NCBI GenBank assembly: GCA_002269645.1
Contig: NIVC01002497.1
Location: 62,001 to 126,000 of the forward strand
Reading direction: 5' to 3'
Length of the DNA: 64,000 nucleotides
From: Macrostomum lignano
Lineage: Eukaryota
The notes beneath the pieces are model-generated. The model was not told the DNA's origin, made no database searches, and worked only from the letters and a program-made list of their open reading frames with translations. The position numbers and the translations under genes are program-made. Below are positions 26,337 to 35,350 of this stretch, one piece after another. Numbering within the stretch: the first letter of the stretch is position 1; every line of letters starts with the position of its first letter.

Positions 26337-29300
26337 CTACTGCTCCGGAGATCCGGCAGCTTCGCCGGCACTCTCCATCTGCATCGCCTGGCGCAGCTCC
26401 TCGCGAGTTTCTTCGTAGTCGACAGCCAGCCGCTTGTACAGCAGGATGCACAGCAGGCACATGGAGTTCAGCTGGTACCAGCAGGGCCTGCAGTAGGCGC
26501 CATTGCATTCCAGACAGATTTTGAACTGCTCAAAGCCCCGATCGCCGCAGCAGAGGCACTGTACGTTGCCGTTCATAAATGGCAGGCTGCCAAATATGGA
26601 ATTCCAAGTGGGCGAGCGGAGCCGGAGCTTGGTCACTATGCCGAACGGATCAATGTTGAACTTCTCTGCCAGGATTCGCTGCAGCACCTGCGTGGGAAGG
26701 AAGGAGGGTGTTGTGACGTGACAGGGAGCCTTAAAAGGGCCGTTTTTATTAATTAATAAGTTTTAAGCAATCAAATCAAAGTAATCGTTCAATATTCGCA
26801 TGGTCTCAATCATGGGCTGAGTTAAGGAGGGTGGCTGGCGATGATGGCGCCCATTTTCCTTGGGGCTGAAAAAAGGTCCTCACCGCCCTCAGTTTGCTCT
26901 GTATGGCTCCCCTGTCGTCTATATTATGGCTCCCCTGTCGTCTATATTATGGCTCCCCTGTCGTCTATATTATGGCTCCCCTGTCGTCTATATTATGGCT
27001 CCCCTGTCGTCTATATTATGGCTCCCCTGTCGTCTATATTATGGCTCCCCTGTCGTCTATATTATGGCTCCCCTGTCGTCTATATTATGGCTCCCCTGTC
27101 GTCTATATTATGGCGCCCCTCTCCTCTTTATTATGGCGCCCCTCTCCTCTTTATTTTGGCGCGCCTCTCCTCTTTATTATGGCGCCCCTCTCCTCTTTAT
27201 TATGGCGCCCCTCTCCTCTTTATTATGGCGCCCCTGTCGTCTATATTATGGCGCCCCTCTCCTCTTTATTATGGCGCCCCTCTCCTCTTTATTATGGCGC
27301 CCCTGTCGTCTATATTATGGCGCCCCTCTCTTCTTTATTATGGCGCCCCTCTCCTCTTTATTATGGCGCCCCTGTCGTCTATATTATGGCGCCCCTCTCT
27401 TCTTTATTATGGTGCCCCTCTCGTGTATATTATGACACCCCCACTCTTATGATTAAACTCCACCCCCTCATTTTATATTTCTAAATCCGCCTCTGGTCTC
27501 AATCAATTTCTATAATTAGACCATACTCAGCTTTCACAGACGAATGCAGCTTGGAGCCCTATATACAGTTAGCTCAGACGCACCTGAACACGAAACTCTT
27601 TCTGACGTTTGCCCCGCCGACGAAGCAGCTGGTTGTACAGCGCCACCGTGCGCCGCCTCTGCTGCTCCGGGTAGAACAGCGCGCATAGGAACGGCCGAAG
27701 GCGGCTCATGTAGCCGTACAGCAGGTTCATGCACAGCTTCAGCACCAGCAGGGTCACCACGGCGTTCACGTCATCGTCATCTATGCGCTTGGTTGTGACC
27801 TTGTGGGGGGGCAGGACAATTTGATCTCCGAGGCAAGCAAAGTTTACCATGAAGCTAGCTTTGTATGTCACATTGTGACAATCTTGAAGCTTTGTGTGTC
27901 ACTTTCTTGAAGCTTTGTGTGTCACATTCTTGAAGCTTTGTGTGTCACATTCTTGAAGCTTAGTAATATCACATTCTTGAAGCTTAGTAATGCCACATTT
28001 CTGAAGCTTAGTAATCTCACTTTTTTGAAGCTTAGTAATGTCACATTCTTGAAGCTTAGTAATCTCACATTTTTGAAGCTTAGTAATGTCACATTCTTGA
28101 AGCTCAGTAATGTCACATTCTTGAAGCTTAGTAATCTCACATTCTTGAAGCTTAGTAATCTCACATTCTTGAAGCTTAGTAATCTCACCTTTTTGAAGCT
28201 TAGTAATCTCACATTTTTGAAGCTTAGTAATCTCACATTCTTGAAGCTCAGTAATGTCACATTCTTGAAGCTCAGTAATCTCACATTCTTGAAGCTTAGT
28301 AATCTCACGTTTTTGAAGCTTAGTAATCTCACATTTTTGAAGCTTAGTAATCTCACATTCTTGAAGCTTAGTTGTAGTTATTACAAAGGGGTTGTATCCT
28401 CGTACGCTCGTAGTTGAGCGATGGACTCACAACTTGAAGGTCGGGGGTTCGCTTCCCGATCCCACTGGAACAATTTTTGTCATTGAGCAAGACACTTAAC
28501 TCTGCATTGCTGCAGTTTGCCCAGCTGTAAAATGGGTGCCAGCATTAGCTGGGGTAATTGAGGGTGTGTGTGTGTGGCGACCCCTCCCCCCCCCCCAGTC
28601 CTTGGACTGAACAGCCGTACGCAGCCTTCAGATGCGCCGCGCAATTGCTGCGGCTGAGCTGTTGGTTGCACATCTGCCCATTAGGGCAGGTGTAATCGAT
28701 TATTATTATTATTATTATTATTATTATTATTATTATTATTATTATTATTATTATTATTTAAGCTTAGTAATGTTCCATTCTTGAAGCTTAGTATGTAACC
28801 TAAATTGAAGCCTAGTACCAATATGTCAGCTAAATTGAAGCTTAGTATGTCACCTAAATTGAAGCCTAGTATGTCACCTAAATTAAAGCTTAGTAGAACC
28901 ACTTAGATAGAACCATCCAGCTCACCTTGCAGTCCTCCAGCTCCACAGTGGTATTGACCACAGCGGTGTGGGTGAGGTCTCGCACTAGGCCAAAGGTGAG
29001 CCTCTTAGCCAGATTCGAGTCGACGCCCTGCACCGTGACGTTCAACTGCGAGGTGCCTTCGAAAGTGAGATTGGCCGGCAGCCCGGCGTTCATCATGTCG
29101 ACGGCTTCGCACACCAAATAGTTGGCCAAGAAGATCACCCCGATGATGGCCAGCATGCCCAGGTCGGCCACGTACTTCCGCTTGATGGTGCTGACCTCGC
29201 CAGCGGTCAGGCTGACCTGCTCCGGGTAGGACAGCAGCTCCTCCTCGTGCTCGTCGCCGATCCACACCGGCTCCCGCATCTCCCAGCCGGCGAACGGCAG

Positions 29301-35300: not shown

Positions 35301-35350
35301 TCCCAGTTTTGTAGTCGGTCGGCTAGCGCTTCCTCGGATTGCAGGTTCAT
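26337..35350 (-). CDS. Tetraspanin (peripherin/ROM1-like) fused to DC-STAMP-family protein with C-terminal C4C4 RING (DCST1/2, Sneaky, SPE-42 type); 8 exons, ~1266 aa
   Basis: Exons (minus) 35350-34781, 34656-34046, 33415-32134, 31119-30979, 30212-30066, 29408-28926, 27799-27584 and 26687-26337; all GT-AG with phases 0,2,0,0,0,0,0 matching. N-terminal part: 4 TMs and an EC2 loop MDKVHFNEKCCGVRSADDW...PLSC..P..RP..SC. C-terminal part: SKRFLLVTLLFIPSL..GG...SGPFQTLMHNL....C, a Cys-rich ectodomain, FCNHYVTQQLIDIDYRR...LLP, LRPFLCALFYPEQQRRRTVALY, and CLCC...CLEC..AYCRPC...CLLC. Confidence 0.88.
26905..27430. repeat. Minisatellite, 23-bp unit ATATTATGGCTCCCCTGTCGTCT
   Basis: Intronic tandem array; the unit drifts to ...GCGCCCCTCTCCTCTTT. 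Confidence 0.95.
27870..28890. repeat. Minisatellite, 24-bp unit TTGAAGCTTAGTAATCTCACATTC, interrupted by a SINE
   Basis: Array present on both sides of 28373-28759. Confidence 0.93.
28373..28759 (+). mobile_element. tRNA-derived SINE with (TAT)n tail
   Basis: tRNA-like head (A-box-like TAGTTGAGCGATGG; ACTCACAACTTGAAGGTCGGG; B-box GGTTCGCTTCC). Central core TTGAGCAAGACACTTAAC...CCCAGCTGTAAAATGGGT. 3' (TAT)n tail at ~28698-28759. 9-bp TSD AAGCTTAGT at 28364-28372 and 28760-28768. Confidence 0.85.
29458..29940. repeat. Minisatellite, 14-bp unit GAGATCTTCCCGCT
   Basis: Intronic tandem array. Confidence 0.95.
30232..30975. repeat. (TAAC)n microsatellite
   Basis: Fills almost the whole intron between exons 4 and 5 of the fusion gene. 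Confidence 0.98.
31205..32092. repeat. Minisatellite, 23-bp unit CCAAACAGCACCCACTATTCACT, interrupted by an RTE fragment
   Basis: Array present on both sides of 31357-31886. Confidence 0.9.
31357..31886 (-). mobile_element. 5'-truncated RTE-clade LINE (3' end)
   Basis: ORF 31868-31398 LFQAVIETVLLYNAETWTLT...RRLQLAGHLIR is a typical RTE ORF C-terminus. (TTG)n 3' tail. 11-bp TSD CCAAACAACAC at 31346-31356 and 31887-31897. Confidence 0.9.
33435..33995. repeat. Minisatellite, 21-bp unit CAGCACCCACTGTCTGCCCTG (intron joining the tetraspanin and DC-STAMP modules)
   Basis: Tandem array; it produces the spurious repetitive N-terminus of ORF 32089-33990. Confidence 0.95.

Follow-up and report, generated by a model that had tools for sequence, protein, structure and literature searches.

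Evidence for a fused tetraspanin–DCST gene in Macrostomum lignano and other flatworms

Of the sperm factors of fertilisation, DCST1/2 (SPE-42/49, Sneaky) are those conserved most widely, and on the egg side CD9/CD81, both tetraspanins, are the classic fusion factors. The role of the DCST/SPE-42/Sneaky family in fertilisation is documented (PMC8055269, PMC8989947, PMC3053230), a RING finger has been described in SPE-42 (PMC3053230), and tetraspanins and DC-STAMP-family proteins are each genetically required in cell–cell fusion events (PMC8406655, PMC8429379 and a SPARK preprint). Here we describe a locus in a 64,000-nt stretch of the M. lignano genome (the window, to which all positions refer) that is one copy (Mlig000509.g1) of a gene that encodes a single membrane protein of 1240 aa. 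In all likelihood it is a real fused tetraspanin–DCST gene that is conserved in flatworms.

Gene model and predicted product

The gene occupies positions 26337-35350 of the minus strand, with a start codon at 35350-35348 that is preceded in the window sequence by an in-frame stop codon. It has eight exons and seven GT-AG introns, all of which keep the frame, as the initial annotation had proposed (Table 1); the corrected spliced product, however, measures 1240 aa instead of about 1266, carries 10 predicted TM segments and is GenBank PAA57369.1 (BOX15_Mlig000509g1), which the long exons of the window match at 99-100%. The intron at the junction of the two halves is the only one in phase 2, the others all being in phase 0. 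Scanning the window for Rfam families and tRNAs gave no matches.

Support for the junction in M. lignano comes from database gene models together with the published account of their making. The GenBank models of the assembly are RNA-seq derived, from StringTie/TACO and a de novo transcriptome, and were split by the annotation pipeline at SL-read or poly(A) peaks (PMC5730564); the fused model PAA57369.1 was left uncut. UniProt A0A1I8GX48 has the same junction and differs in splicing elsewhere. We regard this entry as annotated independently, on the older M. lignano assembly. The claim that one protein combines a tetraspanin with a DCST/RING part is thus upheld by the RNA-seq-based model and by a second annotation with the same junction, as well as by conservation in trematodes and a cestode, by an intron-free Logan ORF and by a reading frame that spans the boundary in Schistosoma japonicum (see below). 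Moreover, purifying selection acts on both halves between gene copies, which differ by 16 synonymous versus 3-4 nonsynonymous codons in the tetraspanin part and by 22 versus 4 in the DC part.

Table 1. Features of the tetraspanin–DCST locus in the window
Feature	Position	Strand	Description
Exon 1	34781..35350	-	aa 1-190, with the cytoplasmic N-terminal tail and tetraspanin TM1-TM3; same sequence as the beginning of PAA57369.1
Exon 2	34046..34656	-	End of TM3, EC2 (CCG, DW, PLSC), TM4, ~55-aa cytoplasmic tail; phase-2 donor CAG/GTGCGT
Junction intron	33338..34045	-	708 nt; contains the 21-bp tandem array
Tandem repeat	33436..33995	.	21-bp unit, 26.5 copies, within the junction intron
Disputed segment	33338..33415	-	78 nt; coding in the initial annotation, but intronic
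Exon 3	32134..33337	-	Starts G/ATG (Met395); cytoplasmic N-terminal part of DCST, TM5-TM6 and the greater part of the large ectodomain with its cysteines
Exon 4	30979..31119	-	Spliced model
Exon 5	30066..30212	-	TM7-TM8
Exon 6	28926..29408	-	TM9; Pfam DC_STAMP begins (aa 945)
Exon 7	27584..27799	-	TM10; Pfam DC_STAMP ends (aa 1107)
Exon 8	26337..26687	-	Cytoplasmic tail, C4C4 RING (coding 26448-26558), stop TAG 26339-26337
AATAAA	26156..26161	-	~180 nt past the stop; candidate poly(A) signal for the whole gene, read from sequence

In its TM segments and EC2 motifs the N-terminal module agrees with the initial description of a complete 4-TM tetraspanin, although the tetraspanin signal of the M. 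lignano protein in profile comparisons is weak. A Kyte-Doolittle scan gave four hydrophobic segments (aa 74-92, 137-155, 175-193 and 323-341), and the EC2 of ~130 aa contains CCG (254-256), DW (262-263) and PLSC (293-296); the first and last of these motifs, together with C309, are invariant in an alignment of six fused proteins. Both termini of the module would be cytoplasmic. When the spliced model was compared with the two Pfam families, DC_STAMP (PF07782) scored 74.5 bits (E 1.3e-20, cut-off 25), and Tetraspanin (PF00335) scored 32.7 bits (E 7.7e-8) with the N-terminal 398 aa, a marginal match at a gathering threshold of 32.1, and 27.9 bits (E 2.3e-6) with the full protein. The tetraspanin match spans aa 165-341 and covers profile positions 103-222 only; hhalign gave the M. 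lignano module a probability of 84%.

The likeness to peripherin/ROM1, which had also been pointed out, is seen with the family profile and not with the single sequence. Searched against the PDB, the profile of the fused modules matched tetraspanins only, with peripherin-2 as the best solved structure (E 4.3e-11), followed by CD63 (8e-8) and ROM1 (1.2e-7), whereas the M. lignano sequence by itself reached peripherin-2 at E 1.1, and a PDB sequence search with each half separately gave no significant match. AlphaFold2 returned a poor model of the module from a 5-sequence alignment (pLDDT 53.6, pTM 0.30), with which Foldseek found no PDB match below E 3.8, so that the fold comparison was uninformative. 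A word-index homologue search with the tetraspanin half gave zero matches.

The remainder of the protein is DCST/Sneaky/SPE-42-like and ends in a C4C4 RING, as initially annotated on both counts. In addition to the DC_STAMP domain it has six hydrophobic segments and a loop of ~330 aa (508-836), in which the ectodomain cysteines C723, C734, C765, C777 and C790 are invariant in the six-protein alignment, and an eight-Cys finger at aa 1168-1204, CLCCGDRGFEQFKICLECNGAYCRPCWYQLNSMCLLC, of the pattern C-x2-C...C-x2-C...C-x2-C...C-x2-C. An exhaustive search of representative sequences returned 226 homologues at E <= 1e-3; the best-matching stretch lay in the DCST half for all 150 of those listed, among which the closest non-self homologue scored 76 bits at ~25% identity. 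With the full model as query, the word-index search retrieved the window's own protein alone. The order of parts is the tetraspanin (4 TM, Cys-rich EC2), a cytoplasmic linker of ~55 aa, the DCST part (6 TM, ~330-aa ectodomain) and the RING. The count of TM segments is even in either half, so that linker and RING would both lie in the cytoplasm and the topology is coherent.

The fused mRNA might be the main product among several, accompanied by a 398-aa tetraspanin translated from mRNA that retains the junction intron, or by an 846-aa DCST protein that starts at Met395. The read-through stop lies five codons past the donor in all gene copies, exon 3 has Met395 as its first complete codon, and the junction intron differs in phase from the other introns of the gene. 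Databases, on the other hand, hold no model of either short form, and the junction intron lacks a poly(A) hexamer (12 variants). We therefore regard short isoforms of this kind as unlikely. An 847-aa 'partial' model (g4) was considered as a stand-alone DCST and rejected, its contig beginning inside the junction intron.

The fused architecture in flatworms

The same architecture is found in related flatworms, as the initial annotation had suggested might be sought. Pfam Tetraspanin and DC_STAMP occur together in Paragonimus westermani (two assemblies; KAF8572061.1, KAA3673323.1), Calicophoron daubneyi (CAL8079585.1), Trichobilharzia regenti (CAH8826299.1), T. szidati and Taenia solium (KAL5966444.1), and in the Logan contig ERR14224704_277333 both lie on a single uninterrupted ORF of 1129 aa. 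In S. japonicum (L005), the ORF 9461-11041 is free of stops from EC2 through TM4 and the linker to DC TM1-2, the boundary lying within one open reading frame where M. lignano has an intron. The fused proteins of the other flatworms have the same RING, are only 17-20% identical to that of M. lignano and have longer linkers, of up to ~250 aa. The view of the M. lignano gene as a one-off chimera of parts that are normally separate genes consequently fails for flatworms, since trematodes and a cestode share the architecture. Its companion statement, that no such case had been described, agrees with our literature searches, which gave no paper describing a tetraspanin–DCST fusion; the proteins are already present in GenBank/UniProt as unreviewed entries named 'hypothetical protein', 'DC_STAMP domain-containing' or 'DCST1'. 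In S. japonicum, two models labelled 'DCST1', of 929 and 932 aa, are thereby shown to be N-terminally truncated, and a 935-aa Taenia asiatica model looks truncated as well.

Outside flatworms, the DCST1/Sneaky-like matches among those listed are 650-870 aa long and come from fly, lamprey, ascidian, nemertean, annelid, mollusc, brachiopod, echinoderm and scorpion; the module HMM found no tetraspanin in these homologues. With the six-protein alignment as query, the word-index search returned only the window's own protein and one unrelated weak match.

The fusion is an old, lineage-wide feature of flatworms, for which we infer a single origin from architecture and taxonomy rather than from a tree. 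A separate origin in M. lignano and in Neodermata would be in keeping with several differences. With the HMM built from the other fused modules, the M. lignano module reaches only 22.6 bits, less than with the generic Pfam model; the DC half has no special affinity for the other fused proteins (159 bits versus 128-171 for non-flatworm DCST1s); and the neodermatan linker motif YISN..LL.ACQ...WLEKG.KIGW is absent from M. lignano. All the fused proteins nevertheless share the domain order, the topology and the EC2 pattern CCG-x5-DW, P-x-SC-x-D and a later Cys, of which CCG, W, PxSCxD and one more Cys are invariant in 6/6 fused proteins. Furthermore, the named species in which the fusion occurs are all flatworms, and none of the non-flatworm DCSTs among the top 150 homologues carries it. 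Weak affinity is, moreover, expected of a protein as divergent from everything as that of M. lignano (best listed non-self match 76 bits). Convergence thus appears very unlikely. Profile scores were dropped as a means of establishing orthology of the fused proteins, the DC-half values quoted above giving no discrimination.

The junction intron

According to the gene models, the tetraspanin and DCST parts are joined by cis-splicing of the repeat-filled junction intron, from 34046 to 33337. The donor hexamer at 34046/34045 is that of intron 7, and the acceptor at 33338/33337 (CAG/G-ATG) follows from the PAA57369.1 residues ...VPTR/MVRPIF. Donor and acceptor are conserved at three loci despite the differing length of the intron, which is 279 nt in the paralogs L001 and L002. 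Left unspliced, the junction would close the protein as ...PTRCVGC* at an in-frame TGA TAG (34032-34027). The 21-bp array is open in 3/3 frames and its open frame is therefore uninformative.

Alternatively, the locus might be an operon of two genes, in which the tetraspanin mRNA ends after ...PTRCVGC* (TGA 34032-34030), the DCST mRNA is SL trans-spliced at 33337 with its ATG at 33336, and the fused model is an assembled precursor RNA or a rare cis-spliced by-product. Such an arrangement would not be out of place in M. lignano, where ~30% of genes are SL trans-spliced and ~15% lie in operons, with spacers that peak near 100 bp once repeats are subtracted (PMC8629364), and where precursor RNAs make up ~7% of assembled transcripts (PMC5730564). 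The distance from stop to ATG is ~694 nt, of which 560 are tandem repeat, so that the repeat-adjusted ~130 nt is typical operon spacing, and an in-frame ATG stands right after the acceptor 33337. A precursor RNA would, however, keep the spacer with its in-frame TGA TAG, and in the model the spacer is precisely spliced out, in frame; nor did the pipeline, which cuts at SL/poly(A) peaks, cut at the junction (PMC5730564). At three loci the junction intron or spacer contains 0 of 12 tested poly(A) hexamer variants. The acceptor TGGCAG departs at position 2 from the reported trans-splice motif YTNCAG, and a cis donor upstream favours cis-splicing (Conrad et al., as cited in PMC8629364). In addition, the ATG in which the SL ends would not be in frame with the DCST ORF and would start an upstream ORF of 7 codons. 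The fused architecture is also kept in other flatworms, as a single reading frame in S. japonicum. An operon that yields two separate proteins is accordingly highly improbable, whereas the ATG after the acceptor and the adjusted spacing mean that a separate DCST mRNA or a tetraspanin-only product could arise as additional isoforms.

As for the exact boundary, the initial annotation placed the intron at 34045-33416, with the correct donor and an acceptor (33416/33415) that PAA57369.1 and the paralog copies contradict. Comparison of four gene copies shows the 78 nt between the candidate acceptors to be intronic, because their length varies (78 nt here and, in the paralogous loci, twice 73 nt and once 72 nt). 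The 1266-aa model with its added 26-aa linker QETGCQCEGCTASKPLHRITAHSLGR has a GT-AG pair and keeps the frame in the window copy and in L004, yet it has practically no chance of being right and was rejected, given that its acceptor leads to a frameshift into a stop in L001 and L002, lies in a pyrimidine-poor context (ACAAGAGACACCCAG) and adds a segment that varies by indels between gene copies and is missing from 5/5 database proteins.

Possible function and relation to known systems

For Mlig000509, the full texts searched and the supplements of PMC5816591 contained no expression or phenotype data. By homology alone, the fused protein probably serves in sperm as a factor of gamete fusion or adhesion that brings its own tetraspanin; to a role in sperm fusion itself we give even chances. 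Like DCST1/2, SPE-42/49 and Sneaky, it would work in the sperm membrane when gametes adhere or fuse, and the attached tetraspanin would provide, in cis, the membrane-organising or partner-clustering role that free tetraspanins have elsewhere. That the fusion is kept under purifying selection in flatworms both free-living and parasitic speaks for a direct link in function between tetraspanin and DCST, and hints that two cell-fusion protein families work together. As a 'Rosetta stone', it might even imply that, in animals at large, the DCST-family sperm proteins depend on a tetraspanin acting in cis, within one membrane, a partnership that flatworms made permanent by fusing the two genes. This generalisation is doubtful; if true, an unrecognised sperm-side tetraspanin would belong to the DCST1/2 fertilisation core of other animals, vertebrates included. 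RNAi and transgenesis exist for M. lignano, so the modules can be separated or deleted there and fertility scored.

Compared with peripherin-2 and ROM1, the fused module likewise has four TM segments and an EC2 of ~130 aa with CCG and PxSC, whereas its C-terminus runs on into the DCST protein. With DCST1, Sneaky and SPE-42 the M. lignano protein shares the DC_STAMP domain, the multi-pass topology, the large Cys-containing ectodomain and the cytoplasmic C-terminal eight-Cys finger, and the named homologues that match it best are 'sneaky-like' and 'DCST1' proteins. It is nevertheless highly divergent from this family and, unlike the non-flatworm members, adds an N-terminal 4-TM tetraspanin module. 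The requirement for CD9/CD81 in gamete fusion and for tetraspanins in myeloid cell fusion parallels that for the DC-STAMP family. In mammalian fertilisation, however, these tetraspanins are egg-side and encoded by separate genes, while in M. lignano the tetraspanin is covalently part of a presumed sperm-side protein.

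Gene model and junction of the window gene

Translating the minus strand in six frames and joining the pieces by hand yielded eight exons, with GT-AG in every intron, phase 2 for the junction intron between the tetraspanin-coding exon 2 and the DCST-coding exon 3 and phase 0 for all others; the donor hexamer GTGCGT is common to the junction intron and intron 7, and an AATAAA lies ~180 nt past the final stop. The protein-collection search returned a single match, PAA57369.1 ('hypothetical protein BOX15_Mlig000509g1 [Macrostomum lignano]', 1240 aa), which carries the precomputed Pfam domains PF00335 and PF07782 and agrees at 99-100% with the long window exons. 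Its sole difference from the initial annotation is the absence of 26 residues at the junction (...VPTR/MVRPIF), which uses the acceptor CAG/G at 33338/33337 with an ATG one base further on. The acceptor previously placed at 33415 does yield the proposed 1266 aa, but its extra residues are missing from PAA57369.1, and applied to the paralogous loci L001 and L002 it causes a frameshift into a stop. Across the four gene copies of the assembly (window, L001, L002 and L004) the two candidate acceptors are 78, 73, 73 and 72 nt apart; these lengths, together with the frameshift, indicate that the stretch between them is intronic. The junction intron is 708 nt long in the window but 279 nt at both L001 and L002; both splice sites are kept, and most of the difference reflects how many copies of a 21-bp repeat are present.

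The GenBank models of this assembly are RNA-seq-derived (StringTie/TACO plus a de novo transcriptome), and the annotation pipeline split transcriptional units at every spliced leader (SL) read peak or T-fill poly(A) peak (PMC5730564); the fused model was left uncut by this step. Between the window and L001 or L002, the tetraspanin part differs by 16 synonymous versus 3-4 nonsynonymous codons and the DCST part by 22 versus 4, which points to constrained coding sequence in both halves, to a similar degree. Furthermore, the junction is common to five database proteins, among them UniProt A0A1I8GX48, which is spliced differently elsewhere and which we take to be an independent annotation of an older M. 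lignano assembly. Model g4 ('partial', 847 aa) owes its shortness solely to its contig, which starts within the junction intron.

Trans-splicing affects ~30% of M. lignano genes and operons are many, their spacers peaking near 100 bp after repeat subtraction (PMC8629364). That additional short isoforms are made at the locus is unlikely, and that the tetraspanin and DCST are only two separate genes of an operon is highly improbable. The locus geometry does fit an operon, since read-through of the junction donor meets a stop after 5 codons (...PTRCVGC), 560 of the ~694 nt from this stop to the ATG are tandem repeat, and Met395 lies immediately past the acceptor. However, the gene models splice the spacer out exactly and in frame, which precursor RNA would not show, and a scan of the junction intron at three loci for 12 poly(A) hexamer variants found none. 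In addition, the acceptor TGGCAG departs from the published YTNCAG motif, the ATG at the SL 3' end would not share the frame of the DCST ORF, and the upstream cis donor would be expected to outcompete trans-splicing. The fusion in M. lignano is supported by RNA-seq-based gene models, and the decisive evidence is that from other species.

Repeats and neighbours

The window region is eukaryotic, and a tandem-repeat array is present in each of introns 2-7 (26902-33995). The open frame of intron 3, without a match in a Pfam scan, presumably resembles the C-terminal part of a non-LTR retrotransposon reverse transcriptase (...LLYNAETWTLT...RRRLQLAGHLIR...), and a stretch of intron 6 what we take to be a tRNA-derived or CORE/MIR-type SINE (…cccattttacagctgggcaaactg…gttaagtgtcttgctcaa…ggatcgggaagcgaaccc…); ARAGORN and Rfam scans of the 64-kb window returned nothing. 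The exon 1 donor is duplicated (CTGCAG/GTGAGGCAT twice); its second copy, if used, would extend exon 1 by 38 nt and disrupt the reading frame, and the GenBank model takes the first. Intron 1 has 124 nt in the window versus 774 nt in the paralogous loci. The neighbouring methylenetetrahydrofolate reductase gene (MTHFR) is convergent with the DCST gene and occupies the same position in L001, L002 and L004. Copy g3 at L002 (NIVC01003260.1) encodes 1196 aa (P0004) with a frameshift within the RING finger (…CLCCGDRALSSSKSV…), which reflects either decay of the copy or a mistake in the assembly.

Features of the fused gene and its surroundings (exons from six-frame translation and manual joining)
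Feature	Position	Strand	Detail
Exon 1	35350-34781	-	
Exon 2	34656-34046	-	
Junction intron	34045-33338	-	
Exon 3	33337-32134	-	corrected acceptor; start from PAA57369.1
Exon 4	31119-30979	-	
Exon 5	30212-30066	-	
Exon 6	29408-28926	-	
Exon 7	27799-27584	-	
Exon 8	26687-26337	-	
Tandem array, junction intron	33436-33995		21 bp x26.5
Tandem array	31887-32094 and 31208-31356		23 bp
Tandem array	30231-30975		TAAC x186
Tandem array	29460-29914		14 bp x33
Tandem array	27878-28372		24 bp x21
Tandem array	26902-27441		23 bp x23.5
Tandem array just upstream of gene	35644-36494		18 bp
Open frame, intron 3	31401-31904	-	168 codons; same 23-bp repeat on either side
Exon 1 donor duplication	34720-34796		38-bp tandem
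Presumed SINE-like stretch, intron 6	~28400-28680	-	
MTHFR gene	~17198-22238	+	Pfam MTHFR 175.6 bits, first long exon

Fused proteins in other species

When a 1200-aa version of the fused protein was run by HMMER exhaustively against 1.84 billion representatives, 226 matches passed E <= 1e-3; in each of the best 150 the stretch that aligned best fell within the DCST half, and the top-scoring non-self match had 76 bits and 25% identity. Among the long matches, Pfam identified Tetraspanin together with DC_STAMP in Paragonimus westermani (two assemblies, 1306 and 1322 aa), Calicophoron daubneyi (1080 aa, N-terminally truncated), Trichobilharzia regenti (1327 aa), T. szidati (1337 aa), Taenia solium (1176 aa) and P0007, a 1129-aa protein encoded by one unbroken ORF (213-3602) on a 3681-nt Logan contig (ERR14224704_277333, run ERR14224704). 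The fused-module HMM found a tetraspanin in none of the remaining best 150 of the 226 matches, and the named DCST1/Sneaky-like matches of other phyla (Teleopsis, Petromyzon, Styela, Tubulanus, Owenia, Lingula, Magallana, Physella, Acanthaster, Centruroides) have 650-870 aa. The 3.7-kb Logan contig is A+T-rich with a 212-nt leader ahead of the ORF, and P0007 is about equidistant from annelid, vertebrate and neodermatan DCST1.

The Schistosoma japonicum 'DCST1' models (929 and 932 aa) seemingly miss the tetraspanin module. By tblastn and ORF analysis, a single open frame of their locus (9461-11041) encodes EC2 (QCCG...DW...PKSCC), TM4, the linker and the first two DCST TM segments, and therefore crosses the domain boundary without a splice; the exon for TM1-3 is found further upstream in the same orientation. 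Because tetraspanin exons precede it in the same frame and orientation, the annotated 929-aa protein is truncated at its N-terminus and begins at an internal Met. Regions 299-649, 9461-11041 and 23734-24483 were noted on this contig (SKCS01000393.1). A second DC-STAMP-like stretch ~9 kb downstream, tail-to-tail and 36% identical to Trichobilharzia aa 1035-1273, sits within an Ig-domain gene model of 2635 aa, possibly merged in error.

The M. lignano module scored 22.6 bits against an HMM of the other fused modules (hhalign: 84% probability, E 7.6e-6, over EC2), and the DCST half 159 bits against the fused-DCST-half HMM, no better than the 128-171 bits obtained with random non-flatworm DCST sets. 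Judged by these scores the protein is very divergent. The invariant EC2 motifs of the aligned fused proteins are CCG, W, PxSCxD and a later Cys. The profile scores show weak or no special affinity; that the fusion arose once is therefore inferred from identical domain order, shared EC2 motifs and taxonomy, not from a tree. The fused architecture is already in public databases as unreviewed predicted proteins; our literature searches found no paper on a tetraspanin-DCST fusion and none tying DCST genes to flatworms.

Topology, likely role and affinities

Hydropathy gave 4 + 6 TM segments; since both halves have an even number, the fusion is topologically neutral. The tetraspanin EC2 has ~130 aa. 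The DCST loop 508-836, with five invariant cysteines, would be extracellular, and the cytoplasmic side would hold the N-terminus, the linker of ~55 aa that follows TM4, and the C4C4 RING at the C-terminus (1168-1204). An AlphaFold2 model of the tetraspanin module proved too poor to use.

By homology with DCST1/2, SPE-42/49 and Sneaky (PMC8055269, PMC8989947, PMC3053230 and the SPARK preprint), the fused protein would most likely act in the sperm membrane in gamete adhesion or fusion. The built-in tetraspanin might organise or stabilise the complex in cis. A literature search for expression or phenotype of the M. lignano gene found none. That the protein helps to form the syncytial tegument of Neodermata is a less parsimonious reading, because M. 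lignano, whose epidermis we take to be cellular, also carries the gene. The fusion links two protein families each genetically required for cell fusion, and the experimental tractability of M. lignano adds to its interest.

The earlier description of the tetraspanin as peripherin/ROM1-like holds weakly, at the family level: the single M. lignano sequence had no significant match among solved tetraspanins in the PDB, whereas for a profile of five fused modules tetraspanins were the only matches. For this profile peripherin-2 ranks first (E 4.3e-11), followed by CD63, ROM1, and TSPAN10, TSPAN7 and TSPAN15.
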